The notes under the pieces: generated by a model | Database searches by the model: none | What the model saw: the letters and a program-made list of their open reading frames with translations, nothing else | Told to the model about the DNA's origin: nothing | Program-made: the position numbers and the translations under genes | Virus record (IMG/VR): IMGVR_UViG_3300042868_005134 | Location: 186,001-250,000 of that record | Length of the DNA stretch: 64,000 nt | Reading direction: 5' to 3' (one strand) | Shown: piece by piece, positions 34,034 through 51,398 of the stretch | Position numbering within the stretch: position 1 is the stretch's first letter | Layout: every line of letters starts with the position of its first letter

Positions 34034-34257
34034 TAGATTTAGAAACATTCGAATTACGTAAACTACAAACAGAAGCTGCTCGCGCATTGTCTTCGATGGA
34101 AGCAACTAATGACAATATATACAAATTTAACCAAGTTGCTAGACATGACAGTCATTTATGGTATAAAGCTGTAATTAATTGGTATATAGAACAACATGGG
34201 GGCCTCCCAAGCGAGATAGGTCCAGGCTCAACAGTTAAAATGGTAACAACACAATGA
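34030..34257 (+). CDS. Small hypothetical protein (75 aa)
   Basis: SD AGGA; ATGA overlaps with both the methyltransferase and the first radical SAM gene. Confidence 0.7.
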   Translation: MIDLETFELRKLQTEAARALSSMEATNDNIYKFNQVARHDSHLWYKAVINWYIEQHGGLPSEIGPGSTVKMVTTQ

Positions 34258-35417
34258 TGTATAATTATGATGATATAAAAACAGTTCACTTAGAAATTAC
34301 TGATAAGTGTAATGCTGCTTGCCCTATGTGTGCAAGAAATATCAATGGTGGTGAAGATAATCCTCAGTTGCCAAATACTGAAATCACACTAGCAGATGCT
34401 GAAATAATTTTTCCAGTAGATTTTGTTAAACAACTTGATCGAATGTATATGTGCGGTAATTTTGGTGATCCTATGGCAGCATCTGACACACTTGAAGTTT
34501 TTCAATATTTTAGGAAACATAATCCTAAAATGTCGTTGTCGTTACACACTAACGGCAGTGCTAAAACAACTGAATGGTGGAAAACTTTAGCAGCAACACT
34601 AAGTCCTAACGGGTATGTGGTATTTGGTATTGACGGATTAGCGGATACTAATCACTTGTATAGGCAAAATACTAATTTTGACAAGATTATGCAAAATGCT
34701 CAGGCTTTCATCGATGCGGGTGGCAGAGCTCGTTGGGATTACATTGTATTTGCACATAATGAGCACCAAGTTGAAGAAGCAGAAAAATTAGCTAACAACA
34801 TGAAGTTTGAAAAATTTCAAATTAAAAAGTCGGCAAGATTTGTTAGTAATGACGGCACTACTAAAGACCAGCACATTGCTCGTAATCGGAAAGGTATGTC
34901 TACTTTATTACAGCCCCCTACTAACCCTAAGTATCGAAATAGTGCATTACAAGAAATAAGTAAGATTGAGAGTAAGTCCAGAGTTGTTAAATTTAATCCT
35001 AGCAAAGTTTCAGAATTAACAATTTTAAAAAAACAAGTATTCAATACTGATCCTGAAAAGAAATCTCCTATTGAAAAATACTGGGATACTACTGAAATTA
35101 CATGTAAAGTTGCAGAAGAAAAAAGCATTTATATCAGCGCAGAAGGCATAGTACAACCTTGTTGTTGGACAGCTGGTCAAATGTATGTGTGGTTTTTACA
35201 ACCTAAGAGTACGCAAATTTGGTCTCTTATAGACGAAATTGGAAAAGACAAATTAAACGCTAAACTCACTTCGCTAAAGAGTATAGTTGACGGATTATTC
35301 TTTCAAGACTTACTACCTGAAAGTTGGAAGAAAACAAGTTGTGCTACTGGAAAACTGGCAATATGTGCTAGGACATGCGGCGGTAAGTATAACGCCTTTG
35401 CTGAACAATTTAAATAA
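34254..35417 (+). CDS. Radical SAM enzyme with C-terminal twitch/SPASM-like domain (type C)
   Basis: CNAACPMC; 'CGNFGDP'; 'HTNG'; C-terminal 'TCK...IYISAEG.VQPCC...CARTC'. Confidence 0.9.
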   Translation: MMYNYDDIKTVHLEITDKCNAACPMCARNINGGEDNPQLPNTEITLADAEIIFPVDFVKQLDRMYMCGNFGDPMAASDTLEVFQYFRKHNPKMSLSLHTNGSAKTTEWWKTLAATLSPNGYVVFGIDGLADTNHLYRQNTNFDKIMQNAQAFIDAGGRARWDYIVFAHNEHQVEEAEKLANNMKFEKFQIKKSARFVSNDGTTKDQHIARNRKGMSTLLQPPTNPKYRNSALQEISKIESKSRVVKFNPSKVSELTILKKQVFNTDPEKKSPIEKYWDTTEITCKVAEEKSIYISAEGIVQPCCWTAGQMYVWFLQPKSTQIWSLIDEIGKDKLNAKLTSLKSIVDGLFFQDLLPESWKKTSCATGKLAICARTCGGKYNAFAEQFK

Positions 35418-35418
35418 T

Positions 35419-36369
35419 TTAAATTATTATTTTTTTAGATATATTAGTTTCTAAGGCACAGCTACACCACGCCTGTTTACAAACTACTGGTGTTTTCGAT
35501 AATCCTTTAAAATCTTTTAAAGTTCCTAAATTCTGCCCTTGACTACAACTAGCGCCAGTTATGTCTCCAAAAAAAGAAATATATAAACAATCTGCTCCAA
35601 TATTACAAGTCCAGTTAAAAAACTTGTTTAATCTATTGTTAAGCAAATACTGATCGTCAAGAGGTTCTTCTTGTCCATTATCGTATTTTATAAATGTTTG
35701 TCCAAATCCCCGACCTTGACTTAGATTGAATGGAAACGCTTTATTTACAGGTGTTTCTTTTTCGAACCATGCCAGCTGTTGTTCTGTGTACTCGTAGCTA
35801 GTATCTTGTTCTAATTGATCTTTCTTAAATACTCTAGTAAATCCAGTATGTGCCATACTGTCCATGATTTTAAATTTATTGTATACTTCGACGCACTTAT
35901 CCCATAACGGTGGCCACATTAATACAAATACTCCAGCATTGGTAACTTTGCCAATAGCATCCATTTTTTCAAATATATCTGTATTATCCCATTCTGGATG
36001 ATAGCTCAATGTAACTTTGTACAATTTTGGAGCATATTCTTGCCACCAGGCTAAACTCCGTGTACCGTTTGTGTTAACATGGCAGTGCCAATTATATTCG
36101 TTAAACTTGTCGCACAAGAATTCAAAGTGCGGAGAAATAGTAGGTTCTCCGCCGTTTAAAAATATATGTACTGGTCTATCTTTAACTTCTTCTTTTAGCT
36201 TAGATAAGAAATTTTCTAGTATCGCACGATCTTCTACCTTGTTGATTATAGTGTTAGTGCCTCGATGTAGTAAATCAGGACAATAGGTACAGTGATATGT
36301 ACAAATACTGTTCAAAGTCCAATTAATTACAAGTACATTATTCTTGTCATAGATTTCTATAGGTTTCAT
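35419..36369 (-). CDS. Radical SAM enzyme (type D)
   Basis: CTYHCTYC; 'GGEPT'; 'NTNG'; C-terminal Cys cluster 'WTC..G...I...G.I..ASC...C....CSC'. Confidence 0.9.
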   Translation of the reverse strand: MKPIEIYDKNNVLVINWTLNSICTYHCTYCPDLLHRGTNTIINKVEDRAILENFLSKLKEEVKDRPVHIFLNGGEPTISPHFEFLCDKFNEYNWHCHVNTNGTRSLAWWQEYAPKLYKVTLSYHPEWDNTDIFEKMDAIGKVTNAGVFVLMWPPLWDKCVEVYNKFKIMDSMAHTGFTRVFKKDQLEQDTSYEYTEQQLAWFEKETPVNKAFPFNLSQGRGFGQTFIKYDNGQEEPLDDQYLLNNRLNKFFNWTCNIGADCLYISFFGDITGASCSQGQNLGTLKDFKGLSKTPVVCKQAWCSCALETNISKKIII

Positions 36370-36377
36370 ATTACGTC

Positions 36378-36397
36378 TATTTATCTAGCCATAAATA
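36378..36397. promoter_or_regulatory. Divergent pair of late-like promoters
   Basis: TATTTAT (36378-36384) and ATAAATA (36391-36397) between divergent radical SAM genes. Confidence 0.65.
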
Positions 36398-36401
36398 TCT
36401 C

Positions 36402-37679
36402 ATGACACCAAATACTATATTTCCAATTAAGTCTGAAACTGCCTGTTTATTAAAATGGGCCTGGAGCAGTCTTTTCGTATATCAAGGAACTTCTAGCTCA
36501 TGCCATCGAACAATACATTCTTCGTTTGGTCCAGAGTTAATAGGCACTTTTCACAATACTCCTGAAAAAATCAAAGAACGTGAATTAATGCTTAACGGTA
36601 AATGGCCAGGTCGCGGGTGTGAATATTGCCGAGATATTGAAGCCGCCGGCGGCACAAGTGATCGTATGAGAGAATTGGAAGGGTTGTCGGATCCACTTTA
36701 CCGAGGATTTATCCCGCCAGAATTAAAAGATAATCCCTTTGCTACAGTTGTCACTCCTACTATGTTAGAAGTTTACTTTAGTAATTTGTGTAATATGACA
36801 TGCTTGTATTGCGGCCCAGATTTAAGTACACAATGGGTCGCTGAAAATAATATTCATGCAGGTGATCGTGGTAAACAGCAATTTAAAATACATCAAGAAC
36901 GACAAAATTTATATCCTGAGCGTTTAAAATATTTTTGGGAATGGTTATCAAACAACTATCAAAGTCTCAGGATGTTTAACGTATTAGGTGGCGAGCCATT
37001 TTACCAAGATGAAACAGAACAATGTATTGAATTTTGGAATAACAATCCCAATCCCAAAATGCATTTTAGCATATTTTCTAATTTAAAAGTTAAGCCTGAA
37101 AAATTTAAAAAAATATTAGATAAATTTGATTATCTTATTAAAAATAAAAAAGTAAGTTCTATAGGGATAACAGCTAGTCTTGATTGTTGGGGCGTCGAAC
37201 AAGAATATGTGCGATGGGGCGTAGATTTAAATGAGTGGGAAACTAATTTCAAAACTCTTGTTTACGATTACCCTAGCATAAAGATTTGCGTTAACAGTAC
37301 AATAAATTGCCTTTCTATAAAAACTATGCCCGAATTACTAACTAGAATTAATGATTGTAATTCTTATCGTAAAAGTATTACAGGTAATGATATTATTCAT
37401 AGTTTTAATATGTTAACGGAACCAAACTTCATGAATGCTAAGATTTTCCCGGCAGGGTTCTTCGATGAAGATTTTAAAAAGATTTTAACTGTTATGCCTT
37501 CAGCCACAGCAAGAGAGCAGAGTCTAAAAGAGCATATGGAAGGTATTTGGAAAGCATACAATTCTGCCAAACACGATCCTAGTCAAATTGCTTTGTTAAA
37601 AGAAGTACTCGACGAAGCAGACAAGCGTCACAAAACCAATTGGCAAACAATTTTTCCTTGGTTAACGGACATACATTAA
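36402..37679 (+). CDS. Radical SAM enzyme with N-terminal auxiliary Cys domain (type B)
   Basis: N-terminal 'ACLLKW...SSCHR...GCEYC'; core CNMTCLYC; 'GGEP'. Confidence 0.9.
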   Translation: MTPNTIFPIKSETACLLKWAWSSLFVYQGTSSSCHRTIHSSFGPELIGTFHNTPEKIKERELMLNGKWPGRGCEYCRDIEAAGGTSDRMRELEGLSDPLYRGFIPPELKDNPFATVVTPTMLEVYFSNLCNMTCLYCGPDLSTQWVAENNIHAGDRGKQQFKIHQERQNLYPERLKYFWEWLSNNYQSLRMFNVLGGEPFYQDETEQCIEFWNNNPNPKMHFSIFSNLKVKPEKFKKILDKFDYLIKNKKVSSIGITASLDCWGVEQEYVRWGVDLNEWETNFKTLVYDYPSIKICVNSTINCLSIKTMPELLTRINDCNSYRKSITGNDIIHSFNMLTEPNFMNAKIFPAGFFDEDFKKILTVMPSATAREQSLKEHMEGIWKAYNSAKHDPSQIALLKEVLDEADKRHKTNWQTIFPWLTDIH

Positions 37680-37682
37680 ATA
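37677..37682 (+). promoter_or_regulatory. T4-late-like TAAATA box
   Basis: Overlaps the upstream stop codon; 4 nt before the SDR ATG. Confidence 0.5.
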
Positions 37683-37686
37683 CTAG

Positions 37687-38232
37687 ATGAAAATACTTAT
37701 TACTGGAAATCCAAATTTTGGCTTAGCATCTGAATTGTTTAAGCTATACCCTGACGCAACATTCATATCGAGAGAAAGTGGATATGATTTAACCACCCGA
37801 GAAGGTTATCGTAAACTAGGTGAGATAGTCGCAGAATACGATATTTTTATCAATTCAAGTGCGTTATGGAAATTTAATCAAACGCTAGTACTTGATGCTG
37901 TATATAAAAAATGTGTAGAGATCAAACACAATATGCGAATCATTTGTATAGGTAGCACTACAGATAGAGTTAAGAAAGCAACATCGTGGATTTATAACGC
38001 TGAGAAAAAAGCACTACGTGATTATTCAAATAGTTTAAGTTTAACAGGTGTGTGGGATTCAGGCCCAACAGTCTCGCTAATCAGTTTTGGCAGTTTGTCT
38101 AATGTACAAGAAAAACACCCAGGCCGTGTTTGTTTAGAACTATCACGTGCCGCATCTTATATTAAATGGTTGATTGACCAGCCTTCGGATATATGTATTA
38201 ATGAAATCAGTATTGACCCTTTACAACATTAA
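37687..38232 (+). CDS. Short-chain dehydrogenase/reductase (SDR)
   Basis: 'KILITG...GL' Rossmann start, 'FINSSA', 'IGS', catalytic YxxxK ('YNAEK'). Confidence 0.75.
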   Translation: MKILITGNPNFGLASELFKLYPDATFISRESGYDLTTREGYRKLGEIVAEYDIFINSSALWKFNQTLVLDAVYKKCVEIKHNMRIICIGSTTDRVKKATSWIYNAEKKALRDYSNSLSLTGVWDSGPTVSLISFGSLSNVQEKHPGRVCLELSRAASYIKWLIDQPSDICINEISIDPLQH

Positions 38233-39545
38233 TGACTAAAACCTTTTGTCCTATTCCTTGGAATTTCCAAGCAGTCCGTAATAACGGAGATATTCGTGTA
38301 TGTTGTCAAGCCAACGTAACAGAAAATCAAGGTGTGGTTAGACATGCGGACGGTACTCCGTTCAACGCTGGTAAAGATGATATGGAAATTGCTCGAAATG
38401 CCACACTGATGAAAGAAGTTCGTATGAACATGTTGACAGGCGAGTGGAGTAAAGAATGCGGCCGGTGCCAACAAGAAGAAGCAAGTGGCTTAAACAGTCG
38501 TAGACAATACGAACTAGATAACTGGAAATTTAGTATAGATGATGCTCGCAACATTACAGACGTTGATGGCACCATTAAAAATAGACAGTTAGAATATTAT
38601 GATTTACGATTTGGTAACTTATGTAACTTAGCGTGTCGTATGTGTGGTCCAACCGATAGTCATACTTGGTATGAACAATGGACAGAATATCATGGTAGTA
38701 CAGATTACGCAGACACACACGGCATTGTAAAACTAATTAAAAACTCTAAAGGCAGATTAAGTACTGAGGATTATGATTGGCATAACAGTGAAACATTCTG
38801 GCAGCAAATAGAAGCTAATATTCCAAATATCAAACATGTCTATATGGCCGGCGGTGAACCAATGATGATTGAACGTCATTATGAGTTCTTACAAAAGTGT
38901 ATCGATATGGGTCAAAGTAACAAGATGATTATCGAGTACAATACTAACATGAGTAATTTGCCACAACGTGTATTGGATATGTGGACGCAGTTTAAGCAAG
39001 TTCGTGTTGGCGCCAGTATGGATGGTATGGGCGATGTAGTAGAATATCAGCGCTGGCCTCTAAAGTGGAGCCAGGCATATAAGAACTTACAAAAGCTAGA
39101 TGAATATGCACAAAATAATTCCAATATACTTGCTTGGTTAGCGTGTACAGTAACAGCATATAACATTTGGCACATACCTCGTTTTATGAAGTGGAAATTA
39201 CAAAGTAGTGGATTTAAAAAGATTAATAGTACAAAAAAACGTCCTATCATAACACATCATGTGGCACATGGTCCAAAACGTGTTAATGTACGGGTATTGC
39301 CAGCTGACATGAAACAAGAGATAGTTGAATACTATGCTCGTTGGATAGAAGAATTTAAAACAGAATATCCAGAAGATATTGCTAAGAACGCTGAAAATAT
39401 TTTAAACAGCATTACCAAGTATATGTTAGATGCAGATTACAGTGATAAACTTCCTGAGTTTATTAAGTTTACAAAGTATTTAGACAGTGCCAGAGATCAG
39501 CATATTGTTGATATAGCACCAGAATTTAAACGATTATTTGATTAA
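38232..39545 (+). CDS. Radical SAM enzyme with N-terminal twitch-like domain (type A)
   Basis: 'FCPIPW...G.IRVCC...ECGRC'; core CNLACRMC; 'GGEP'; 'YNTN'. Confidence 0.9.
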   Translation: MTKTFCPIPWNFQAVRNNGDIRVCCQANVTENQGVVRHADGTPFNAGKDDMEIARNATLMKEVRMNMLTGEWSKECGRCQQEEASGLNSRRQYELDNWKFSIDDARNITDVDGTIKNRQLEYYDLRFGNLCNLACRMCGPTDSHTWYEQWTEYHGSTDYADTHGIVKLIKNSKGRLSTEDYDWHNSETFWQQIEANIPNIKHVYMAGGEPMMIERHYEFLQKCIDMGQSNKMIIEYNTNMSNLPQRVLDMWTQFKQVRVGASMDGMGDVVEYQRWPLKWSQAYKNLQKLDEYAQNNSNILAWLACTVTAYNIWHIPRFMKWKLQSSGFKKINSTKKRPIITHHVAHGPKRVNVRVLPADMKQEIVEYYARWIEEFKTEYPEDIAKNAENILNSITKYMLDADYSDKLPEFIKFTKYLDSARDQHIVDIAPEFKRLFD

Positions 39546-40658
39546 GATTTCAGAAGGTCTGTCTTTAGTTCTTCGTTGTCTTATAAAATGGTTACCAGTA
39601 GCATCTACACACAAGTTACTTGGTTTGGCAGCATCTGGCGCACCTATACCTAATATAGCAACAGGGTAATTATCTTCGGTAATGCCATGCTTGCTAGATA
39701 ACCAGTTAGAAATATTGCTCGGATTATAACATCCGCAAAATCCTGTCTTGTATCCTAGTAATTGTGCGGCAAGTGCTACCGCGCCTGCACTAATACCCGT
39801 ATTCAAACTTTGATGTCTTGTTAGTTCTATATCGGTATCGTATTCGAGATCGAACAGTCTATTATAAGTTTCGTCTTTATTAGCAGTCCACATAAAAACA
39901 ACTGGTGCAAGTAACTGTGTGTTATAGTTGTGCTGATTTCTGGAAGTATATGCTGTACCAATCTTTAATACTGGCATCCTTGGCAATCCGTGATTAATAA
40001 CATCGATTATAATATTAGTAAGCTGACCAATGTCGGTAGCTTCTGCTGTAATGTTAGGAATTAAAACTTGAGGTTCAGCAAGCTGAATAGCTGGTATTTT
40101 AACATTAACTAAGATATATTCTGTAATCAATCTTTGAATAAATCTATGTGCTTCAAGTTCGGCAATTTTCCTAACTTGTAAGTTTCCGTAGATATCAAAA
40201 TACTTTGATACTATGTTACGTGTGTACTTATTAGAATCTAGTTTTAGATCTTTAATGTAAGCTTCTACAACAAATCCAATATCTCTGTAACATTTGTGCG
40301 CCTCGTATACAAATCCATCAAACGGCGCACTATTAGTATCTACTTTATGCTTGATCCAAGCAGCACCTTCTCTTTTAATAAATTCTTTATTTTCTTTTAG
40401 TAATCGAACAGCGTTAGGGGCTAAATTCGGCATATTATCCGGAATATAACCTTCACTATGACAAATTTCAAATAATTCTTCTTTTGCGTCTGCGTCAGTA
40501 AATGCGATACATTTAAAGAAGTTAACATTCTGCTTGGTAGGAGTTCCATTAGCTACTTGTAACAGTAAGTTTAAATTTTCTTCAGATACGCTGTCGCTAA
40601 TCCAGTTTCTTTGACAAGCATTAATTGATGTTAGGGCTGATAATAGTTCGGTATTCAT
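39534..40658 (-). CDS. Nitroreductase-like (FMN-binding) protein with a large internal insertion
   Basis: N-terminal 'CQRNW..DSV....L..LL..A..TPTKQN' and C-terminal 'TGISAG...LAA..LGYKTGF...LGIG' follow the nitroreductase pattern. Confidence 0.65.
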   Translation of the reverse strand: MNTELLSALTSINACQRNWISDSVSEENLNLLLQVANGTPTKQNVNFFKCIAFTDADAKEELFEICHSEGYIPDNMPNLAPNAVRLLKENKEFIKREGAAWIKHKVDTNSAPFDGFVYEAHKCYRDIGFVVEAYIKDLKLDSNKYTRNIVSKYFDIYGNLQVRKIAELEAHRFIQRLITEYILVNVKIPAIQLAEPQVLIPNITAEATDIGQLTNIIIDVINHGLPRMPVLKIGTAYTSRNQHNYNTQLLAPVVFMWTANKDETYNRLFDLEYDTDIELTRHQSLNTGISAGAVALAAQLLGYKTGFCGCYNPSNISNWLSSKHGITEDNYPVAILGIGAPDAAKPSNLCVDATGNHFIRQRRTKDRPSEILIK

Positions 40659-40659
40659 G

Positions 40660-41916
40660 TTAGATTCCTTCTTTAATATTTATCATCCACGGAAATACCT
40701 GCCGCCAATTTGTATTTCTGCGTTGGTCCATTTTATCTAAGAATATTTTTAATTCTTTGACTTTTTCATAATTTGTAGGAGTTTCGATAATTTCTTTAAA
40801 AATAGCATTTACATAATTGCTGTATTCTGCGTCATTAAACATCTGCCCATTTAATTCTTGTATTTCTCTTATTTTGTCAATATATATCTCACCTGGAATA
40901 TTATGTGGATCTAAAATTTCAGGAGAAATACATTTATTGTAATTTACACTGATTTTTTTACCCTTACATGTGTTGTTCCAATGAATGACTTTTTTAATTA
41001 ATTCTGGAGTACTATGTATCGATAATGCTGACACTGTCCAGTTCATTGTGGGAATAATTTCAGGACATTCGTATATTAAGTATTCCATATTTTCTGTGAA
41101 TGTCGCAAGATCCAATCCTGTTCTAATATATTCTGATTCTATCCCCCAGCAGTCAATACTAGCAGTTAGCTCAACAGTATTACAAGTTTTTACTAATTGT
41201 TTAATTTTTTCCATCTGTTTTTTAAAAAGAGATGGTTTAATTTGCATGTTAGAAAAGATCTCAACATCGAGATCTGGATTTGGATGTGCAATCATCCAAT
41301 CTATACAATCGAAAGTTTCTTGTTGAATTAATGGTTCGCCACCTAGTATATGAAATTCTCGTAAATCACAATAATGTTTTTCCATCCACACATAAAACTC
41401 AGCTAACCTTGTTTTATAAGTCACATCATCCATTGCGATAGAATTTAAAAAAGAGTTATTACTAGGCCCGTATTGTTCCTCTTCCAACACCCACGAACTA
41501 CTTAAAAATGGCCCACAATATAAGCATTTTAAATTACATTTATTATTGAAATAAATTTCTAACATTGTAGGATTTACTGAAGTTTGTGTTGGGTTAGTGT
41601 ACAATTCTTTAGGTACATATTTCTCGTTATACGGTCTGGACAACCAATTTTTTCTATCACTAAAATTACTATATGTTTCTTGATCCTTACAGCTTTCGCA
41701 CCCGCGTCCTGGCCACTCGTTTTTTAACATTTTTTCTCTATCTATAATTACTTCGGGCGTATTGTGAAAATTTTCAATATTATCTACTTTAACATTTTCT
41801 ACCCTGTGACAAGAACTAGACGTACTAGTCCATAAGTATAAACTACTCCATGCCCATTTTAATAAACAAGCCTGTTCAGATTGGATTGGGAACCATTTTT
41901 TAGCATTTTCAGTCAT
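40660..41916 (-). CDS. Radical SAM enzyme (type B), close paralog of 36402-37679
   Basis: 'ACLLKWAWSSL...SSSCHR...WPGRGCESC'; core CNLKCLYC; 'GGEP'. Confidence 0.9.
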   Translation of the reverse strand: MTENAKKWFPIQSEQACLLKWAWSSLYLWTSTSSSCHRVENVKVDNIENFHNTPEVIIDREKMLKNEWPGRGCESCKDQETYSNFSDRKNWLSRPYNEKYVPKELYTNPTQTSVNPTMLEIYFNNKCNLKCLYCGPFLSSSWVLEEEQYGPSNNSFLNSIAMDDVTYKTRLAEFYVWMEKHYCDLREFHILGGEPLIQQETFDCIDWMIAHPNPDLDVEIFSNMQIKPSLFKKQMEKIKQLVKTCNTVELTASIDCWGIESEYIRTGLDLATFTENMEYLIYECPEIIPTMNWTVSALSIHSTPELIKKVIHWNNTCKGKKISVNYNKCISPEILDPHNIPGEIYIDKIREIQELNGQMFNDAEYSNYVNAIFKEIIETPTNYEKVKELKIFLDKMDQRRNTNWRQVFPWMINIKEGI

Positions 41917-41920
41917 GAAA

Positions 41921-41954: not shown

Positions 41955-43358
41955 ATGAATAAAATATCCAAAACATTTTGTATTTTACCCTGGGTACATT
42001 TAAGTACCCGACCTGATGGTAGTATGAGAGTTTGCTGTACAGCCAATGCTAGTAGCGTTGGCCAGACAAACGATAGAGAACACGGCGGCATGGTAGGTGT
42101 TCTTAAGACAGACGCCGGCAAACCTAACAACTTAAATGTTAGCGATTTCAAAAGTGCATGGAACAGTTCCTATATGCGAAATGTTCGCAAACAAATGCTT
42201 AACGGTGAACAGCCTCCTAGTTGTTTAAAATGTTATAAAGAAGAGGCAGCTGGACATAATAGTAAACGTATGTGGGAAACTAAGTATTGGAGTCAACGTG
42301 TAAGTGTTAATAAGTTAATTGAAGATACTGCAGAAGATGGTAGTGTTCCACCGCAACTTGCCTATATCGATTTACGCTTTGGAACTAAATGCCAGCTAGC
42401 GTGTGTAATGTGTAGTCCTCATGATAGTTCTGGCTGGATTAAAGATTATAAAGCCATCTTTTCTGAAGTAGAAAATGCCAGTTTAAAACAAACCATGTTA
42501 TGGACTGACAAAGGCTCTACCAACGGTAGTAGTTATAATTGGCACAAACAAAACCCTGTGTTCTGGCAACAGTTTTATGAACAAATTCCTAATATGCAGC
42601 AAATTTATTTCGCTGGCGGAGAAAGTTTAATTATTGAAGAACACTACGAAATTCTTGAAGAATGTATTCGTCAAGGTCACGCCAAGAACTTAGAGTTACG
42701 TTACAACTCAAACGGCGTTGAATGGCGCGATGATCTATTTGACTTATGGAAACATTTTAAACTAGTGAGATTCCATTACAGTGTAGACAGCATTGGAGAA
42801 ATGAATGCCTATATTCGTTACCCTAGTATATGGGAACGTACTAAGGAAGTATTTCACATTCTTGATAAGCAAACAGGCAATAATGTTGAAGTTACAGTAG
42901 CTTGTGCTGTACAAGCTCTTAATATCTATTACTTGCCTGACTTTTTAAAGTGGAAATTAGAAGAGGGGTTTACAAAAATTAATATGTGGCCGTTTGGTGC
43001 AGGCGGCGTTAATTATCACTTTGTTTATCACCCGCCGCACCTTAATGTTAAAGTACTTCCTAAAGAATTCAAAGAAGCTTGTCGTAAAAAATACGAAGAG
43101 TTTTATTCATGGTGGGAAGCAAATTGGGAAAAAGGCATTCCTAGTTGGCATAAAGGTAAAGTAACATATGAAGATTGGCGTAAAGCAGAATATGGTATTA
43201 GCCGTTTGGAAGGTATGTTAAAATTTATGGAAAGTGAAGATTGGAGTAATCGATTGCCTGAAACTAAAGAATTTTTAGATTTATGCGACAAACAACGAAA
43301 TCTTAACTTTAGTGAAATTTTTCCAGAAATGAAGGATATTTTTAATGGAACAACATAA
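41955..43358 (+). CDS. Radical SAM enzyme with N-terminal twitch-like domain (type A)
   Basis: 'FCILPW.H...DG.MRVCC...SCLKC'; core CQLACVMC; 'GGES'. Confidence 0.9.
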   Translation: MNKISKTFCILPWVHLSTRPDGSMRVCCTANASSVGQTNDREHGGMVGVLKTDAGKPNNLNVSDFKSAWNSSYMRNVRKQMLNGEQPPSCLKCYKEEAAGHNSKRMWETKYWSQRVSVNKLIEDTAEDGSVPPQLAYIDLRFGTKCQLACVMCSPHDSSGWIKDYKAIFSEVENASLKQTMLWTDKGSTNGSSYNWHKQNPVFWQQFYEQIPNMQQIYFAGGESLIIEEHYEILEECIRQGHAKNLELRYNSNGVEWRDDLFDLWKHFKLVRFHYSVDSIGEMNAYIRYPSIWERTKEVFHILDKQTGNNVEVTVACAVQALNIYYLPDFLKWKLEEGFTKINMWPFGAGGVNYHFVYHPPHLNVKVLPKEFKEACRKKYEEFYSWWEANWEKGIPSWHKGKVTYEDWRKAEYGISRLEGMLKFMESEDWSNRLPETKEFLDLCDKQRNLNFSEIFPEMKDIFNGTT

Positions 43359-44172
43359 AAATTTAGAATGGGTCCCTGGCGATCCTATCACAAAAGAAAT
43401 GCTAGAGGTTAAGTCAGAAGATTACGCATTGTGGAAAAAAACGTGGGGCGATAGCTACTGTGTTGAAAATGTATTTGACGATGATGAGTTGACCTGGTTA
43501 GAAGATTTAATGTATAGAAATCATAAAAGTCGACGTGTTAAGAAAAATGGAACGCTTCACTTTAATGTAGATAACAGACTGATACAAGATAAATTTTTTG
43601 ATAAATTAAAATCAGTTATTCCTGAATTGGAAAATACTGAATTATGGGAAGGCAATTTTTTAATAACTGCTACTCCATATAATATACATATCGACACCGG
43701 TAATCACCAAGTGATGAGTAATGCTACCTATGTTCCGGGGAAGCAATTTATTATTCCTCTTTGGTTCTGTCACGGACACAAAGAGACAGATTATCCTGAA
43801 CACGGCACCGCTATTTTTAAAAATCGATTTATCATGTACGGAACAAATTTTGCCAAAGGAGACGCAAAATATGACACAAATGTTTTTTATACAGTACGTG
43901 ACTATAAGGATTTAGTATGCTATAATAAAGATGGCTCCGTGTGGAACGTTGATTGGTCTAAGCGTAGTGTAAGCGATAACGACTATATTAGATACTTTGA
44001 TCACTTTAAAAGAGAATGGCTAGACGGTTTTGAATTAGAAGCAGTCTACCAATGGAAACGTGGAAGTATTATTGTATTTGATAGATCACAAGCGCACACT
44101 GGCATCAATTTTATGAAAAACAAGGTAACACTGAAATGTGGGTTATCTATGATGACAACAGTTAAAAGATAA
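43345..44172 (+). CDS. Putative 2OG-Fe(II) oxygenase-fold protein
   Basis: HxD ('IHIDTG') and distal His ('WKRGSIIVFDRSQAH'), matching the HxD...H facial triad in a double-stranded beta-helix pattern. Confidence 0.6.
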   Translation: MEQHKNLEWVPGDPITKEMLEVKSEDYALWKKTWGDSYCVENVFDDDELTWLEDLMYRNHKSRRVKKNGTLHFNVDNRLIQDKFFDKLKSVIPELENTELWEGNFLITATPYNIHIDTGNHQVMSNATYVPGKQFIIPLWFCHGHKETDYPEHGTAIFKNRFIMYGTNFAKGDAKYDTNVFYTVRDYKDLVCYNKDGSVWNVDWSKRSVSDNDYIRYFDHFKREWLDGFELEAVYQWKRGSIIVFDRSQAHTGINFMKNKVTLKCGLSMMTTVKR

Positions 44173-47658: not shown

Positions 47659-48902
47659 TGAGCAAGACTTTTTGTGTTATGCCATTCTGCCATGTCAATA
47701 TTAAACAGGAAGGTAAGGTAAGTGCTTGTTGGAGATATCCTGATAAAATTGGAGATTATACCACACAGAGTATACATGAAGTTTGGAATGGTTCTGAGAT
47801 AAAAGAATTACGTAGACAACTACTCAACGACGAGCGTCCTGTAGGATGCCGTAGTTGTTGGGATATGGAAGATAGCGGAGTTCGTAGTACACGATCACAA
47901 ACAGCAGTCGATTATAAAGACATAATGAATATTGAAAAAGCAAAAGCAGTAATTACTGAAGATTTTGCTATGCCCGACGAAAATTTAAAAAGTATCGAAC
48001 TTAGATTTGATAATATTTGTAATTTAATGTGTAGGCACTGTAGTCCTGACTATAGCAGTAAGTGGGAAGCGGCAGTTAAACGAGATGAAAAACTACAAAG
48101 TAAAATGATTCAGTTTGGCACTTTTAGAAAAAGTGATGAGCATATAAATCTTAACCAGAAAATTATTGATGAAATTGGTGGTACTATTTCTTCAAATTTA
48201 ACAGAGATTATGCTAGCAGGCGGCGAACCTTTATATCACGAACGCCATTATGATTTTATTAAATCGATGTTACCGAATGCTAAAAATATAAAACTTAGTT
48301 ATAATAGTAATTTAACCACATTAGATTACAAGGGTAATTCCATTTTAGATTTATGGAAGCACTTTAAAAAGGTTAATTTGCGTGTTAGTATTGATGGCGA
48401 TCCTAGTTGTTATCAATATGTTAGAGCACATGACGGCTTGACTTTAATTGAAAAAAACATTACACTAGTACATAACGTGCCTAATACTAGAGTTAGTGCA
48501 ACATGTACTACTAGTTTATTGAATATAACAAGATTGATATCGATTATAGAATATTTTTTGTCGTTAGGCGCATATTTTCATGCCAGTATAGTTCAATACC
48601 CACGGGCGTTGAATCCTAAGTTGTTACCACTAGAATTAAAAGAAAAAATAACAACTGATTGGACTAACTGGATTGCCGACATTGACACAAACATTGTAAA
48701 CTGTGTAAAGTTATTGCCAACTACAGACGTTGAATCTCATAAGAAAAACATATTGAAGTTTGGAAATATGATAGTTGATTATATGAATTCGGAAAACTGG
48801 CACGAACACTGGCATGAATTTGTGGATTATTCTGCGGTGCTAGATGACCATTTTAAAACAGACTTGTATAGTGTGTATCCTGAATTTAAATTTGTAAAGT
48901 GA
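47658..48902 (+). CDS. Radical SAM enzyme (type A)
   Basis: 'FCVMPFCH...G.VSACW...GCRSC'; core CNLMCRHC; 'GGEP'. Confidence 0.9.
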   Translation: MSKTFCVMPFCHVNIKQEGKVSACWRYPDKIGDYTTQSIHEVWNGSEIKELRRQLLNDERPVGCRSCWDMEDSGVRSTRSQTAVDYKDIMNIEKAKAVITEDFAMPDENLKSIELRFDNICNLMCRHCSPDYSSKWEAAVKRDEKLQSKMIQFGTFRKSDEHINLNQKIIDEIGGTISSNLTEIMLAGGEPLYHERHYDFIKSMLPNAKNIKLSYNSNLTTLDYKGNSILDLWKHFKKVNLRVSIDGDPSCYQYVRAHDGLTLIEKNITLVHNVPNTRVSATCTTSLLNITRLISIIEYFLSLGAYFHASIVQYPRALNPKLLPLELKEKITTDWTNWIADIDTNIVNCVKLLPTTDVESHKKNILKFGNMIVDYMNSENWHEHWHEFVDYSAVLDDHFKTDLYSVYPEFKFVK

Positions 48903-48906
48903 AAAT

Positions 48907-50226
48907 ATGGAAGATTGGAAAAATACGTATTGTTCTAAATCCTGGACTGATGTTAATGTAGACTTTTCAAGCGAGTTTGTTAAAAATTGCTGTAAATCGA
49001 AGCCTATTAAATTTGTACCTAATTTAGATAAAACTTTCTTTGAGTTCTCTCCAGAGTTACTTAAACGCAAGACTGATAGCTTACAAGGAGTACAAAATGA
49101 AGATTGTCATTTTTGTTGGAAAGAAGAAGGTAAGCGTGTAACTTATAGAGATGTACATAATAAATGGACACCTGAATTTATAGAATTAAATCGTGATAAC
49201 TTATTATCTACTGATAAATCATTTGCGAATTATATTGAAGTTAAGTTCTCCAATACTTGCGATATGGCTTGTTTATATTGCGGCCCTAATTTTAGTAGTA
49301 AAATAGCCATAGAAGAAAAAGTTCGAATTAAAAGTGTGCCGTTAGCATCTGAATTTGAAGCTTTTAAAGAATTTTCAGATCCGCTAATTAAAAATGCAGT
49401 TGAAATTAATAGAGAATCTATTGATAATAGTGTGTGGGATAATACACAATTACGATTTGTATTCTTAGGAGGCGAACCCACGTTGATAGATCAATTTTAT
49501 GATTTTATTGAACATATTGTATCTAGAGTTGAACATCATGCTCAACTAGCAAACTGGAAGCACAAAATGAAAAATATCCGTCTTGAAATTGTCACTAATG
49601 GTAATACTACCCCGGCATTAATGGACAAGTTTTTTAAATTATTATACAGTACAAATTTTGAATGGACAATTGGGATAAGTAACGAATCTTTTGGGCATGA
49701 TGCTGAATTGATCAGACATGGGTTAAATTGGGAACGATTTCAAACTAATTTTAAAAAATATATTTCTGTTCCTAAAAAAATTGACAGCATTAATTTAGCA
49801 CCAACTCTTAATATTTTTAGTTTAAAAACATTTCATCTCTACATGGCATGGGTACATGAGCAATTCGATAATCAGTTAAAATTAACAGGTGTTTGTCCAG
49901 CTTTTACATGGCACGGCAATTTTGTAACAGATCCGGTATTAGACATTAAAGTATTGCCAGTTGAATATAGAAAGTACATTGATCTTGCCATTGAAGTTGC
50001 TGAACGTGAAAATAATCCTAAATTTAAGAATAAAAAAAGTACAATTAAATTTTTAAATCAGATGAAAGATAGGATTGGCACAACTGATCCTGAATCAGAT
50101 GATGCTGTATGGTATAGAGAACGAGCGAGAGATTGGCTTGTGATGAAAGAAAAAAAGAAAGGAGTTAGTAATCTAACACCTTTACTATTGAATATCGAAT
50201 ATCATGATTATAAAAGGTATCTGTAA
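48907..50226 (+). CDS. Radical SAM enzyme (type B-like)
   Basis: 'YCSKSW...NCCK...DCHFC'; core CDMACLYC; 'GGEPT'; 'VTNG'. Confidence 0.88.
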   Translation: MEDWKNTYCSKSWTDVNVDFSSEFVKNCCKSKPIKFVPNLDKTFFEFSPELLKRKTDSLQGVQNEDCHFCWKEEGKRVTYRDVHNKWTPEFIELNRDNLLSTDKSFANYIEVKFSNTCDMACLYCGPNFSSKIAIEEKVRIKSVPLASEFEAFKEFSDPLIKNAVEINRESIDNSVWDNTQLRFVFLGGEPTLIDQFYDFIEHIVSRVEHHAQLANWKHKMKNIRLEIVTNGNTTPALMDKFFKLLYSTNFEWTIGISNESFGHDAELIRHGLNWERFQTNFKKYISVPKKIDSINLAPTLNIFSLKTFHLYMAWVHEQFDNQLKLTGVCPAFTWHGNFVTDPVLDIKVLPVEYRKYIDLAIEVAERENNPKFKNKKSTIKFLNQMKDRIGTTDPESDDAVWYRERARDWLVMKEKKKGVSNLTPLLLNIEYHDYKRYL

Positions 50227-51398
50227 TGAGCGATGATTTATCTTGGTCAGCCTACGACTTTACAAAAATTCCATACAATGATATTCAACGTGTGGGTCAA
50301 CGCACAATGTTATATCGTGACTTGTTTACAGTAAGTTGGCTGTTAGGCCGGTTCTGTAATTATCGATGTAGCTACTGCTGGCCCTATGCTCGCAGTGATA
50401 AAAAAGATCATAGACCTACAGAGTTATGTCTGCTTACGGTAGATGAGATTAAACGTCAAGCTAGAGAGCGAGGATTTAATAGTTTTCACTTTAGTCTAAG
50501 TGGCGGCGAACCAACATTTCATCCAGGCTATATTGATATCCTAAATCATCTTAATAACGACGCAGGGAATACAAACTATACCAGTGTACACATGACAACA
50601 AATATGAGTCGCAGTTTACGTTGGTTTGAAGATGAGTATTGTCCTGCTGTAAGTAAGTTTCACAGAGCTAGTATCACTGCCAGTCTACATACCGAACATG
50701 TAGACACACCAGAGAAAATGCAAGACTTTGCTGACAAATTAATATTGTGTCAAAAACACGATGTTCAAATAACTATCAATATGGTTATGGTTCCTGAATG
50801 GTTCGAACGTGACTTTGAAAATGCATTGTTCTTTCACAATCAGGGAATTAATGTAACACTAAAACCTCAGAGTGATCCTACTGCTAGCCGTGTAGTAGAT
50901 GGGTATACTCCTGAAATGTTAAAACGATTACACAATGGAATGCCACAACGTGCCTTCACAGAGAATAAAGCAGATGAAGCTAAATTAGTCAAACGCCCAA
51001 CTCCTACATTTAGAAAAGTTCCTGATCCATTGTACAAAGAAGAAAACGCAAAAATTCCACAACATTTCCAAGTAGAATTTGTTGATAGCAATAAAAAAAT
51101 CTGGTATATGGATCAAGCTGAACGATTCAATGCGTTCAACTTTAATAAGTTTAAAGGCTGGGAATGTTCCAGTGGATATCGTAGTATTATTATACGTGAA
51201 CCAGATGGCAGCATAAAACGCAGTTATAGCTGTAGTGATGTTCCGTTAGGTAATGTAGAAACTGGCTTTAAATTGTTTGACGGTCCAACGCCGTGTATAA
51301 GTGATAGCTGTGTTAGCAGTGCTGACAGTAAGATTCCAAAAAGATCGCCTGGAACTCATTTACCATTGTGGCCAGGCGATACTACTTATCTTGCTTGA
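50226..51398 (+). CDS. Radical SAM enzyme (type D)
   Basis: CNYRCSYC; 'SGGEPT'; C-terminal 'FKGWECSSG...DG...SYSC...PC...SC'. Confidence 0.9.
   Translation: MSDDLSWSAYDFTKIPYNDIQRVGQRTMLYRDLFTVSWLLGRFCNYRCSYCWPYARSDKKDHRPTELCLLTVDEIKRQARERGFNSFHFSLSGGEPTFHPGYIDILNHLNNDAGNTNYTSVHMTTNMSRSLRWFEDEYCPAVSKFHRASITASLHTEHVDTPEKMQDFADKLILCQKHDVQITINMVMVPEWFERDFENALFFHNQGINVTLKPQSDPTASRVVDGYTPEMLKRLHNGMPQRAFTENKADEAKLVKRPTPTFRKVPDPLYKEENAKIPQHFQVEFVDSNKKIWYMDQAERFNAFNFNKFKGWECSSGYRSIIIREPDGSIKRSYSCSDVPLGNVETGFKLFDGPTPCISDSCVSSADSKIPKRSPGTHLPLWPGDTTYLA

Follow-up and report, generated by a model that had tools for sequence, protein, structure and literature searches.

A hypervariable island of radical-SAM genes beside the tail-fibre genes of a giant lake-water phage

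Twelve intact radical-SAM (rSAM) genes are carried next to the tail-fibre genes of an uncultured 383-kb freshwater jumbo myophage. A few of them are conserved in nearly all related viral loci, whereas the rest behave as swappable cassettes. The island most likely tailors a surface sugar structure, although this reading is tentative and the chemistry was not assayed. The window analysed in this study was a 64,000-nt stretch (positions 186,001 to 250,000 of IMG/VR record IMGVR_UViG_3300042868_005134), and the rSAM genes occupy its positions 34254-51398. Related loci are referred to by L numbers, of which L103 is a locus on a Bdellovibrionales MAG contig.

Results

Twelve intact rSAM genes fall into four motif classes

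A first-pass annotation of the sequence had described twelve rSAM genes in four paralog classes, and this observation was confirmed. All 12 ORFs were found at the expected starts, and each translates to an intact protein with one CxxxCxxC motif. Together they cover 14,601 of 17,145 bases (85%). The Pfam Radical_SAM score was above the gathering threshold for 10 of the 12; ORF 36402 was below it and ORF 40660 had no Pfam hit, but both passed the NCBIfam model NF033640 (N-terminal twitch rSAM). The class motifs were also present. Type A contains TFCxxPW/F...CC or CW...CxxC, type B contains ACLLKWAWSS...SSCHR...CxxC, and ORF 48907 contains YCSKSW...CCK...CHFC. Type C contains GxxxDP and C...PCC...CxxxC, and type D contains WxC...C...C...C. 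These motifs were conserved family-wide. In 110 type C sequences, C284, P302, C303, C304, C371 and C375 were 98-100% conserved and G68, D72 and P73 were 85-99% conserved, while in 70 type D sequences C314, C336, C357 and C362 were 97-98% conserved.

An all-versus-all BLASTP comparison reproduced the four groups. Trees of the N-terminal-twitch family kept type B as a clade (support 100 and 99) and B+48907 as a split (99 and 85), with all four type A genes on the other side (98 and 87). However, the classes are not four independent families. Types A, B and 48907 are sub-clades of one catalogued but uncharacterised family, NF033640, whereas type C has the same two domains in the opposite order and type D has another C-terminal 4-Cys domain. 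In 41955, four invariant N-terminal Cys (C9, C27, C90, C93) precede the core, and this region of the family was hit by the Pfam SPASM and NCBIfam twitch models. The type C C-terminal domain aligned to the N-terminal domain with the Cys columns in register. Two further corrections were made: type D keeps GGEP, and the span also holds three non-rSAM genes and overlaps a conserved 75-aa ORF (Table 1).

Table 1. Features of the island and its flanks, with positions in the window.
Position	Strand	Feature	Evidence and occurrence
29318..30968	+	Two paralogous ORFs (29318-30142, 30126-30968), each with a DxD-like motif; conserved left flank; a glycosyltransferase role is only inferred	Homologs in 19-22 viral loci and in Ralstonia phage RsoM2USA ORF353/352 (33-38% identity); no Pfam, PHROG or PDB hit
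31510..33101	+	Two paralogous predicted GT-A-fold, glycosyltransferase-like proteins (31510-32427, 32427-33101) with an invariant DxD	AF2 model of 32427-33098, pLDDT 90.5; top Foldseek PDB hits nearly all GT-A glycosyltransferases, including ppGalNAc-T, ArnC, WrtF, RmlT and SunS (probability 0.97-1.0, TM about 0.4); D57 and D59 invariant; in 63 viral loci and 3 Bdellovibrionota-bin loci
33098..34033	+	Class I SAM-methyltransferase-like protein; conserved core	Atlas feature and structure neighbours are Methyltransf_11/25/31 clusters (TM 0.54-0.65); in 68 viral and 4 GTDB loci; no direct Pfam hit
34030..34257	+	Conserved 75-aa ORF of unknown function, overlapping the stop of the upstream gene and the start of rSAM 34254	tblastn: 62 loci at 52-71% identity, always just upstream of the 34254-like gene
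34254..35417	+	rSAM type C, anchor 1; core first, then a C-terminal twitch-like 5-Cys domain	Pfam Radical_SAM 34.4 bits; ortholog in 72 of 78 loci at 44-76% identity; hhalign to the type A N-terminal domain, Prob 72%, E 3.4e-5
35419..36369	-	rSAM type D, variable cassette	Pfam 30.9 bits; BLASTP 3e-10 to 50226; orthologs (>=40% identity) in only 2 loci
36402..37679	+	rSAM type B (N-terminal twitch family), variable cassette	NF033640 232 bits (cut-off 170)
37687..38232	+	Short Rossmann (SDR-like) protein, accessory gene	Weak NCBIfam SDR hit; N-terminal GxxxxG-type motif; homologs in 19 viral and 2 GTDB loci
38232..39545	+	rSAM type A, semi-core; sister family to 41955	NF033640 382 bits; orthologs in 35 loci; 38232+41955 split, support 94 and 97
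39534..40658	-	Nitroreductase-fold flavoprotein-like gene, accessory gene	Pfam Nitroreductase 27.6 bits; its protein cluster is in 30 loci, and a representative matches Pfam Nitroreductase; direct BLAST homologs in 16 viral and 2 GTDB loci, one of them in the syntenic Bdellovibrionales cluster
40660..41916	-	rSAM type B, variable cassette	NF033640 237.8 bits; nearest relative in L103 at 47-49% identity
41955..43358	+	rSAM type A, anchor 2; most conserved gene of the island	NF033640 424 bits; 73-91% identical across the related viral loci (100% in the three copies of this phage); 2,367 90%-identity clusters with E <= 1e-5 in a word-filtered search; AF2 model pLDDT 89
43345..44172	+	2OG-Fe(II) oxygenase-like protein (DUF6445-like) with an HxD...H motif	Atlas neighbours are DUF6445, 2OG-FeII_Oxy and PhyH clusters (TM 0.5-0.78); follows 41955 in many loci; present in L103
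44172..46300	+	Two rSAM type C genes (44172-45236, 45233-46300), variable cassettes	Pfam 36.8 and 44.4 bits; BLASTP 5e-31 and 9e-52 to 34254; orthologs in L061 and L103
46297..48902	+	Two rSAM type A genes (46297-47658, 47658-48902), variable cassettes	NF033640 311 and 314.5 bits; N-terminal SPASM-model hit over residues 6-94; 47658 has a 70% ortholog in L004 and a 52% ortholog in L103
48907..50226	+	Divergent N-terminal-twitch rSAM ('B2'), variable cassette	NF033640 158 bits, just under the cut-off of 170
50226..51398	+	rSAM type D, anchor 3, with a C-terminal 4-Cys domain	Pfam 57.9 bits; ortholog at 69-89% identity in 41 loci
51386..56515	-	Accessory block between anchor 3 and ThyX: unknown 446-aa protein, GDP-mannose 4,6-dehydratase, DegT-type aminotransferase, NAD-dependent epimerase/dehydratase-family protein, and cytidylyltransferase-like/cupin (ManC C-terminal) protein	Pfam hits; in L007 and L078 ThyX follows the last island genes (the 50226-like anchor in L007) with no such block, so the block lies inside the variable part; not found in other loci
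56523..57203	-	ThyX, conserved right-hand neighbour marking the island boundary	Pfam Thy1 138.7 bits; same family right of the island in other loci

The rSAM genes belong to no characterised family and are under purifying selection

The interpretation offered in the first-pass annotation was only partly supported. Two outcomes had been set out there as fatal to it, namely that the classes would not form coherent clades or that they would match separate characterised families with high identity, and neither was observed. The paralog classes are coherent, and none matched MoaA, NrdG, QueE, anSME or viperin. All NCBIfam equivalog scores were far below their cut-offs, and no PDB chain gave a value better than E = 1.7e-5. 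The genes are under purifying selection, in line with the strong selection that had been proposed, with dN/dS of about 0.03-0.13, though dS is near saturation. The 41955 ortholog was 73-93% identical across hundreds of contigs.

The set appears assembled from a shared pool of cassettes around a conserved core

The first-pass annotation had also proposed repeated duplication and divergence, which was not supported as stated for this virus. In favor of tandem duplication within the viral lineage, the genes are adjacent, mostly co-oriented and fall into few families, and pairs such as 36402/40660 (39% identity) and 38232/41955 (34%) are each other's closest paralogs within the genome. Nevertheless, the window paralogs share only 22-39% identity, and in the tree no window paralog was the nearest neighbour of another, each having closer relatives in other phages or in Bdellovibrionota bins. 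Orthologs of the individual paralogs were spread over different phages at 45-91% identity. Eight of the 12 had orthologs (>=40% identity) in at most about 10 of 78 related loci, and a contiguous block (43345-50226) was syntenic with the L103 cluster. The set therefore looks assembled from an old, shared pool of cassettes, and tandem duplication taken literally is doubtful.

To compare copy number and content among relatives, 80 related viral loci were examined, in which 43% of genes were rSAM. About 122 rSAM families at 40% identity circulate among 78 loci. Three genes, 34254, 41955 and 50226, are near-universal anchors, which travel with the two GT-A-fold proteins, the methyltransferase-like protein and the 75-aa ORF, often together with 38232. 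The rest vary, with 2-12 rSAM genes per locus.

A glycan-tailoring island is the preferred but tentative reading

The island lies just downstream of the baseplate wedge, a 4651-aa protein and fibre-like ORFs. The analysis itself establishes that a conserved scaffold is present in nearly all relatives, that each phage carries a different selection of rSAM and other tailoring genes between and after the anchors, and that every rSAM class has the SAM-cleaving CxxxCxxC cluster site plus a conserved 4-5-Cys twitch-like domain, N-terminal in types A and B and C-terminal in types C and D. What follows from this for function is inference. In this view, the glycosyltransferases would attach one or more sugars to an acceptor, on which the rSAM enzymes would each perform a different radical C-H functionalisation, such as epimerisation, oxidation, dehydration, C-methylation or cross-linking, with the auxiliary cluster serving for substrate binding or electron transfer. 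The result would be a strain-specific, O-antigen-like glycan, built with the same conserved-flank, variable-middle logic as bacterial O-antigen loci, that, given the position of the island, most likely decorates the virion fibres, with host-envelope modification as the alternative target. The proposal of the first-pass annotation that each paralog acts on a different position or step is plausible, but was not examined experimentally. Its suggested substrates, NDP-sugars or fibre peptides, are exactly the two leading candidates and have not been resolved, and peptide, lipid and DNA targets remain open.

The link to glycans rests on the conserved partner 32427, with its predicted GT-A fold and invariant DxD, and on the accessory genes, which are mostly sugar-tailoring types. 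In this window they are the GDP-mannose 4,6-dehydratase, DegT aminotransferase, epimerase and nucleotidyltransferase. Other loci add a NodU/CmcH-type carbamoyltransferase, and the homologous Bdellovibrionota-bin clusters add a CMP-sugar-type cytidylyltransferase and a SIS sugar isomerase. However, no substrate is shown, the GT-A assignment rests on a fold match with low TM and has no sequence-level support, and the GDP-sugar genes of this window were not found beside the island in other loci. Expression is unverified, as no RNA run was listed. Some accessory genes, namely Asp/Asn beta-hydroxylase, B12-rSAM, nitroreductase, fatty-acid desaturase, AMP-binding enzyme and M16 peptidase, fit peptide or lipid targets equally well.

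Modification of proteins or peptides in a RiPP-like manner is possible but less likely. In this case, the rSAM enzymes would install cross-links, epimerisations or methylations on tail-fibre or other virion proteins, or on a small precursor, with hydroxylases, B12-rSAM methylases and a nitroreductase-type dehydrogenase as co-tailoring enzymes. Most characterised SPASM/twitch rSAMs act on peptides, and the nearest solved structures of 41955 were peptide maturases (SkfB, CteB, SuiB, anSME) as much as nucleotide enzymes (viperin, MoaA), all at TM 0.3-0.4. Related loci carry Asp/Asn beta-hydroxylases, B12-binding rSAMs and nitroreductase-fold proteins, a PqqF-like M16 peptidase flanks the Bdellovibrionales cluster, the island abuts the fibre genes, and the 75-aa ORF precedes anchor 1. 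In contrast, no RRE/PqqD or other peptide-recognition domain was detected in any of the 12 proteins by the Pfam and NCBIfam searches. The 75-aa ORF is conserved along its whole length while the enzyme set varies, the opposite of a leader-plus-variable-core precursor. The conserved partners are GT-A-fold and methyltransferase-like proteins, and the carbamoyltransferase and NDP-sugar enzymes point to sugars.

Remodelling of host envelope lipids or lipoglycans is doubtful. The island would then alter lipid A, LPS or membrane lipids of the infected cell, or of the Bdellovibrionota that carry it, with the rSAMs acting on acyl or isoprenoid chains. Fatty-acid desaturase genes were found inside the L095 cluster and in a phage locus, and an LPG_synthase_TM membrane protein lies beside L103. 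The Asp_Arg_Hydrox family includes the lipid A hydroxylase LpxO, the GT-A hits include the polyprenyl-phosphate transferases ArnC and GtrB, and there were weak Tes and GDGT-MAS similarities. However, the lipid-type genes occur in a minority of loci and this window has none, while the Tes-like scores are generic rSAM-core matches far below cut-off.

Equally doubtful is hypermodification of nucleotides or DNA, or synthesis of a nucleotide-derived small molecule, in which type D and some other rSAMs would act on NTPs or NDP-sugars in the manner of viperin, MoaA or QueE, and the GT-A proteins would glycosylate modified bases. The best named NCBIfam hits of type D were viperin, STM4011, QueE and MoaA, a QueC-like ATP-pyrophosphatase occurs in 42 loci, and ThyX is the right-hand neighbour. 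Phage DNA glycan hypermodification by viral glycosyltransferases is known (cited in PMC12619734). Nevertheless, all those hits were 5-10 times below the family cut-offs, and no DNA transglycosylase, hydroxymethylase or base kinase was found in the island. The same modules sit in Bdellovibrionota bins next to envelope-type genes, and ThyX makes ordinary dTMP.

Comparison with known systems

Six window proteins scored 232-424 bits against NF033640 over the full profile length, and share its N-terminal 4-Cys twitch-like domain followed by the CxxxCxxC core, while types C and D fall outside the family. The family has no known substrate or reaction, and a literature search found no paper on it. A profile of the type A members matched at least 9,285 clusters at 50% identity with E <= 1e-30, so membership says little about function. 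The structurally characterised twitch/SPASM enzymes BtrN, anSME, SkfB and CteB likewise combine an rSAM partial TIM barrel with a Cys-rich auxiliary Fe-S domain, and enzymes of this group were among the best Foldseek hits. In types A and B, however, the auxiliary domain is N-terminal rather than C-terminal, and there was no significant sequence match to any of them, the best being SkfB (E = 0.13). BtrN itself was not among the listed hits, so the sugar-dehydrogenase analogy is only a lead.

Bacterial O-antigen and capsule loci, and virus-encoded glycosylation clusters (chlorovirus and mimivirus fibril glycans, and mycobacteriophage virion glycosylation, the last cited in PMC12619734), have conserved flanks with a hypervariable middle of glycosyltransferases, NDP-sugar enzymes and tailoring enzymes. 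In the viral cases, the clusters lie next to structural genes and give clade-specific surface glycans. Those loci diversify mainly through glycosyltransferases and NDP-sugar pathways and carry at most an occasional rSAM, in contrast to the rSAM-rich loci in this study. No flippase, polymerase or other export gene was recognised here, and no glycan has been observed.

Radical-SAM cassettes have been noted in marine T4-like and pelagimyophage genomes (Nishimura 2017, PMC5332604; Zaragoza-Solas 2020, PMC7029224). These are also uncultured aquatic myophages with many rSAM genes, and one 183-kb genome is reported with 12. The cassettes sit in the variable 'host recognition cluster' next to tail fibres, and two related phages differ by added rSAM cassettes. 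Those papers only count or mention the genes, and homology of the marine cassettes to the present ones was not tested. The phage in this study is a Rak2/RsoM2USA-like jumbo phage from lake water, and the core-plus-variable architecture, the GT-A partners, the domain permutation and the Bdellovibrionota link are not in those papers.

The cultured Ralstonia phage RsoM2USA (MG752970) has only one rSAM at this site, with no variable cassette or anchors 1-3; all its genes there (ORF347-354) are annotated hypothetical, and the genome paper does not discuss them. The gene order after the baseplate, giant-protein and fibre genes is nevertheless the same, comprising an u28971-like gene, two c7 genes, one further ORF (ORF351), a GT-A gene, an N-terminal-twitch rSAM, a GT-A gene and a methyltransferase-like gene, at 25-45% identity. 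The single rSAM thus sits between the two GT-A paralogs, which supports the glycan reading, and this one-rSAM version in a cultured phage gives an experimental handle.

Genomic setting of the radical-SAM island

The IMG/VR record IMGVR_UViG_3300042868_005134 (383,411 bp), which the window matches at 100% identity over about positions 186,001-250,000, belongs to an uncultured freshwater jumbo myophage, and near-identical DNA occurs in at least 24 lake-water metagenome runs. The left end of the window encodes baseplate-wedge proteins, one of which (ORF 591-4031) hit phrog_10646 at E = 1e-294 and was 34-36% identical to proteins of Agrobacterium phage Atu_ph07, Salicola phage SCTP-2 and the Rak2/GAP32-like jumbo phages. 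It is followed by a single 4651-aa ORF, whose only Pfam hit is one FG-GAP repeat and whose position in the cultured Ralstonia jumbo phage RsoM2USA is taken by a 2541-aa structural protein, and then by several tail-fibre-like ORFs that run to about 28.9 kb. A megablast search of the island against isolated phages gave no match, and tblastn of ORF 41955 (ORFs are named here by their first position) against the same set returned only three distant hits, so that no cultured close relative exists. A scan for promoters and terminators gave counts at chance level.

Coordinates of features in and around the island and in related loci
Feature	Sequence	Coordinates	Strand
Baseplate-wedge ORFs	window	21-4031	
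4651-aa ORF	window	4031-17986	+
Two paralogous DxD proteins	window	29318-30968	+
75-aa ORF	window	34030-34257	+
Point of divergence of co-occurring lake contigs	window	43209-43244	
2OG-Fe(II)-oxygenase-like ORF	window	43345-44172	+
VWA/metallopeptidase (DUF2201) and MoxR-type AAA ATPase genes	window	58909-61287	-
One-rSAM module, ORF347-354	Ralstonia phage RsoM2USA (MG752970)	216-222 kb	
Second, distant N-terminal-twitch rSAM	Ralstonia phage RsoM2USA (MG752970)	126.9-128.0 kb	
Multi-rSAM cluster	L103, Bdellovibrionales MAG contig	5650-15781	
Multi-rSAM cluster	L095, Pseudobdellovibrionaceae MAG contig	5131-15289	

Twelve intact radical-SAM genes and their family membership

The first-pass annotation had described 12 radical-SAM (rSAM) genes in four motif classes, namely type A (38232, 41955, 46297, 47658), type B (36402, 40660 and, more loosely, 48907), type C (34254, 44172, 45233) and type D (35419, 50226), and this observation was confirmed. 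All 12 ORFs are present and intact, fill 85% of the 17.1 kb, and each carries one CxxxCxxC motif for ligating the SAM-binding [4Fe-4S] cluster, which is 99-100% conserved in the family alignments. Ten of the 12 scored above the Pfam gathering threshold of Radical_SAM (PF04055, 29.5 bits) with 30.0-57.9 bits, whereas 36402 scored 19.8 bits and 40660 gave no hit, although both passed the full-length model of NCBIfam NF033640 (N_Twi_rSAM, "twitch domain-containing radical SAM protein"). Reductive cleavage of SAM to the 5'-deoxyadenosyl radical was not assayed in this study. The remaining genes of the span are an SDR-like ORF (37687), a nitroreductase-fold ORF (39534, minus strand) and a 2OG-Fe(II)-oxygenase-like ORF (43345). 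The last is an O2-dependent-type gene embedded among oxygen-sensitive rSAM genes, and the pathway therefore mixes aerobic and radical-SAM chemistry in an oxic-water phage.

The class-defining motifs were all found and are family-wide features rather than chance. The extra Cys residues of types C and D are 97-100% conserved across 110 and 70 distinct sequences, respectively, and four Cys residues upstream of CxxxCxxC, as part of an N-terminal Cys-rich twitch-like domain, are invariant in the seven type A and B members of the window (48907 included) and in an alignment of 43 sequences, with CxxxCxxC at a median position of 113-145. Six proteins exceeded the NF033640 cut-off of 170 bits over the full 398-position profile (36402, 232; 38232, 382; 40660, 238; 41955, 424; 46297, 311; 47658, 314.5), whereas 48907 fell below it with 158 bits and types C and D scored 39-53 bits on the core only. 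The SPASM model (PF13186/TIGR04085) hit residues 6-94 of 41955, 46297 and 47658. However, a SPASM domain requires seven Cys residues for two auxiliary [4Fe-4S] clusters C-terminal to the core, whereas only four Cys are conserved here and the domain of types A and B is N-terminal, making it twitch-like and not a full SPASM domain. None of the 12 carries the N-terminal cobalamin-binding domain (PF02310) of B12-dependent rSAM methylases.

Relationships among the four classes

All-vs-all BLASTP reproduced exactly the proposed groups, with identities within a class of only 22-39%. A FastTree of 120 representatives and an IQ-TREE "quick" tree of 56 rows both recovered B as a clade (support 100 and 99), B+48907 as a split (99 and 85), the four A genes on the other side (98 and 87), and 38232 and 41955 as sister families (94 and 97); both trees are unrooted and their deep branches are long. 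Types A and B and, just below the cut-off, 48907 fall in the single catalogued family NF033640. Profile-profile alignment with hhalign showed that the C-terminal Cys domain of type C is probably the same domain as the N-terminal domain of type A (Prob 72%, E = 3.4e-5), with C9/C284, C27-C28/C303-C304 and C90..C93/C371..C375 in register, and outside their own class the best or second-best NCBIfam match of the type C cores was the N_Twi core (E = 1e-10 to 1e-14). Types A, B and C therefore look like one superfamily with the auxiliary domain placed either before or after the barrel. The C-terminal domain of type D matched more weakly (Prob 49%, E = 1.8e-4). The four classes were not placed in a sequence similarity network against radicalSAM.org.

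Incoherent clades, or high-identity matches to separate characterised families, had been set out in advance as grounds for discarding the four-class scheme, and neither was found. The best NCBIfam scores were far below the equivalog cut-offs for MoaA (37 against 284), NrdG2 (22 against 131), QueE (30 against 206), anSME (22 against 349) and viperin (46 against 180), and phmmer E-values against PDB were 0.08 or worse for these families, so that a reading of the genes as NrdG, QueE or MoaA housekeeping enzymes was rejected. No protein reached the cut-off of any characterised family or resembled a solved structure by sequence, and PDB sequence searches with 41955, 34254, 50226, a profile of the GT-A-like partner proteins, 30126, 39534 and 51386 (in the accessory block between 50226 and ThyX) gave nothing useful.

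Probable assembly of the gene set from shared cassettes

To investigate how the set arose, IMG/VR was scanned with 41955. As a result, 164 relatives were found, 80 loci of which were retrieved, and 619 of their 1,447 genes (43%) encode rSAM proteins. At 40% identity over 70% of the length, the 479 distinct rSAM proteins fall into 122 families, 64 of them singletons. Three families are near-universal: 41955-like, present in all loci by construction at 73-91% identity; 34254-like, in 72 loci at 44-76%; and 50226-like, in 41 loci at 69-89%, with many loci ending before reaching it. A 38232-like gene occurs in 35 loci, whereas the other eight window genes have orthologs in 1-10 loci, and the number of rSAM genes per locus of up to 21 kb ranges from 2 to 12. 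In the tree, no window paralog is the nearest neighbour of another. dN/dS against the two closest relatives was 0.03-0.13 where dS was finite, but dS was 1.9-3.1, making these values rough. When the assembled contigs of four lake runs were aligned with the window, the same phage was seen at low depth together with contigs of relatives that match up to the 3' end of 41955 and then diverge, as expected if co-occurring relatives carry different downstream cassettes, although this is weak evidence. The paralogs are therefore ancient, individually maintained and shuffled as cassettes, and are not the product of recent duplication in this genome. The first-pass interpretation, repeated duplication and divergence, was thus supported only in part, as a history of recent tandem duplication is contradicted by both the tree and the identities.

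Conserved flanks and accessory genes

The left flank is constant and comprises two paralogous DxD proteins (29318, 30126), an ORF at 30965, two further paralogs (31510, 32427), an ORF at 33098 and a 75-aa ORF that the first-pass annotation had not mentioned. The last was found in 62 loci at 52-71% identity, is translationally coupled to both neighbours, has no Cys and looks helical, and its function is unknown. Searches of the conserved unknown neighbours against PHROGs and Pfam returned no families. An AF2 model of 32427 (pLDDT 90.5) hit almost only GT-A glycosyltransferases in the PDB by Foldseek, such as ppGalNAc-T, ArnC, WrtF, RmlT, TarS/TarP and SunS/ThuS, at a probability of 0.97-1.0 but a TM of only about 0.4. 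Residues D57 and D59 of its DxD motif are invariant, yet no sequence profile in Pfam, PHROGs or PDB was hit, so that the assignment of 31510 and 32427 to the GT-A glycosyltransferases is left undecided by these data. The proteins 29318 and 30126 (274 and 280 aa, with DVD/DTD motifs) are conserved with RsoM2USA ORF353/352, and a GT8-like glycosyltransferase nature is suspected from the DxD motif alone, without support from any profile or PDB hit. ORF 33098 is class-I-methyltransferase-like by Atlas features and structure.

The right flank is ThyX, downstream of which a VWA/metallopeptidase gene (DUF2201) lies next to a MoxR-type AAA ATPase gene; the same DUF2201 family recurs to the right of the island in other loci. 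Between the rSAM genes and ThyX, the window carries an unknown 446-aa ORF and genes for GDP-mannose 4,6-dehydratase, a DegT aminotransferase, an epimerase and a nucleotidyltransferase-cupin protein. In two of the related viral loci, L007 and L078, ThyX follows the last island genes (the 50226-like gene in L007) with no such block, and the block therefore sits inside the variable part of the island. These genes were not found in the other loci, ruling out the GDP-sugar genes as a universal partner. Other accessory families in the island include nitroreductase (30 loci), a QueC-like ATP-pyrophosphatase (42 loci), a separate B12-rSAM family (14 loci), Asp/Asn beta-hydroxylase (13 or more loci), a NodU/CmcH carbamoyltransferase, fatty-acid desaturase and an AMP-binding enzyme.

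Relatives outside the phage group

To investigate the wider distribution, one genome per GTDB species was scanned with an alignment of three sequences, and 30 loci were found, most of them in Bdellovibrionota (Bdellovibrionales, Bacteriovoracaceae, Pseudobdellovibrionaceae and Oligoflexia) and all but one in MAGs. L103, a Bdellovibrionales MAG contig of 178.7 kb, carries in order 44172-like, 43345-like, 45233-like, 46297-like and 47658-like genes, a nitroreductase, a 40660-like gene and two 48907-like genes at 27-52% identity, and is thus syntenic with the variable block of the window. Its flanks hold a CMP-sugar-type cytidylyltransferase, an Asp/Asn hydroxylase, a methyltransferase, an M16 peptidase and an LPG_synthase_TM protein. 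L095, a Pseudobdellovibrionaceae MAG contig of 160.6 kb, is syntenic with the core module (predicted GT-A, 41955-like at 58%, 34254-like, 50226-like at 64%, 38232-like) and also has a SIS isomerase and a desaturase. These clusters suggest cassette exchange between jumbo phages and predatory bacteria, or mis-binned phage DNA, which is not excluded for the high-identity loci because the cellular rather than viral nature of both contigs rests on 17-21 kb of sequence. If genuine, the sharing with Bdellovibrionota is an unexpected ecological and evolutionary link. Rooted phage-versus-Bdellovibrionota trees per cassette, which would give the direction of transfer, were not built, and the clusters were not checked against long-read or complete Bdellovibrionota genomes. 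The isolate genome Bdellovibrio sp. HCB2-146 has a lone family member in a housekeeping neighbourhood, read as IF-2/NusA/RimP from the neighbouring ORF translations without a profile search.

RsoM2USA has the same gene order with a single type-B-like rSAM between the two predicted GT-A genes. These genes are annotated hypothetical and are not mentioned in its genome paper. Furthermore, a profile of type-A members matched at least 9,285 clusters at 50% identity with E <= 1e-30, and many of the best hits (proteins P0121-P0146) are 770-1400 aa long, many about 800 aa, with two N-terminal-twitch rSAM units in tandem, which may be true fusions or merged gene calls.

Possible function of the island

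The analysis itself establishes that each enzyme has the SAM-cluster site and a conserved auxiliary Cys domain, that the enzymes travel with GT-A-fold (by model) and methyltransferase-like proteins, that the island is hypervariable between conserved anchors (34254, 41955 and 50226), and that it lies next to the fibre genes. What we infer from this, and hold only tentatively, is that the enzymes carry out radical tailoring of a sugar-containing product built by the putative glycosyltransferases, giving strain-specific structures on the virion or on the host envelope. No RNA run was listed, and expression is therefore unverified. Whether cassette content co-varies with fibre-tip sequences and not with core-genome phylogeny was not tested. 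An AF2 model of 41955 (pLDDT 89) resembles SkfB, CteB, SuiB and anSME, and also viperin, MoaA and BlsE, only at TM 0.3-0.4, so that structure does not settle the substrate. Modification of peptides or fibre proteins is a less likely alternative. No PqqD/RRE family appeared in the Pfam or NCBIfam output, and the only small conserved ORF, that of 75 aa, is conserved along its whole length, for which reason it was rejected as a RiPP precursor; nevertheless, RRE-independent protein substrates are not excluded, and whether the enzymes belong with the RiPP maturases is not settled by these observations. Lipid or envelope remodelling and nucleotide or DNA modification are each considered improbable.

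A more far-reaching reading, which we regard as doubtful although the evidence does not rule it out, is a combinatorial radical-SAM diversification system. In this view, a conserved scaffold of glycosyltransferases, a methyltransferase and three anchor rSAMs would lay down a basic structure on the virion fibres, and a freely exchangeable library of more than 100 twitch-domain rSAM families would then rewrite it by radical chemistry, so that each phage strain would gain a chemically exotic, strain-specific surface. The cassettes would be shared by horizontal transfer with predatory Bdellovibrionota, which also need to recognise or evade bacterial surfaces. This would represent a new way of generating host-range or immune-evasion diversity and a large reservoir of unknown carbohydrate or protein radical chemistry.

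Comparison with known systems

The N-terminal-twitch rSAM family is very large and enzymologically unexplored. NF033640 exists as a name only, no paper on it or on N-terminal twitch rSAMs was found, and no solved structure is close enough to match by sequence. The family appears here with predicted GT-A-fold partners, next to fibre genes and in a conserved-core, variable-cassette layout, and a one-gene version exists in a culturable phage, which together provide a tractable context. If the product is a virion or envelope glycan, the island would be a viral counterpart of O-antigen diversification that runs on radical chemistry, with bearing on phage host range, on phage-host arms races in lakes and oceans, and on the discovery of new sugar-modifying radical enzymes.

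Many rSAM genes in uncultured aquatic myophages have been reported previously, with 12 in one marine 183-kb genome and rSAM cassettes in the pelagimyophage host-recognition cluster (PMC5332604, PMC7029224), but neither report analyses them. A paper on the "moraphage" lineage (PMC12619734) does not mention radical SAM and was not shown to concern the present lineage. New here are the anchor-plus-cassette architecture and its scale, the predicted GT-A and methyltransferase-like partners, the permuted twitch domain that probably links types A/B and C, the sharing with Bdellovibrionota, and the minimal version in a culturable phage. We compare the island with virus-encoded surface-tailoring islands, a kind of locus already known, with a substantial chance that its chemistry is new.
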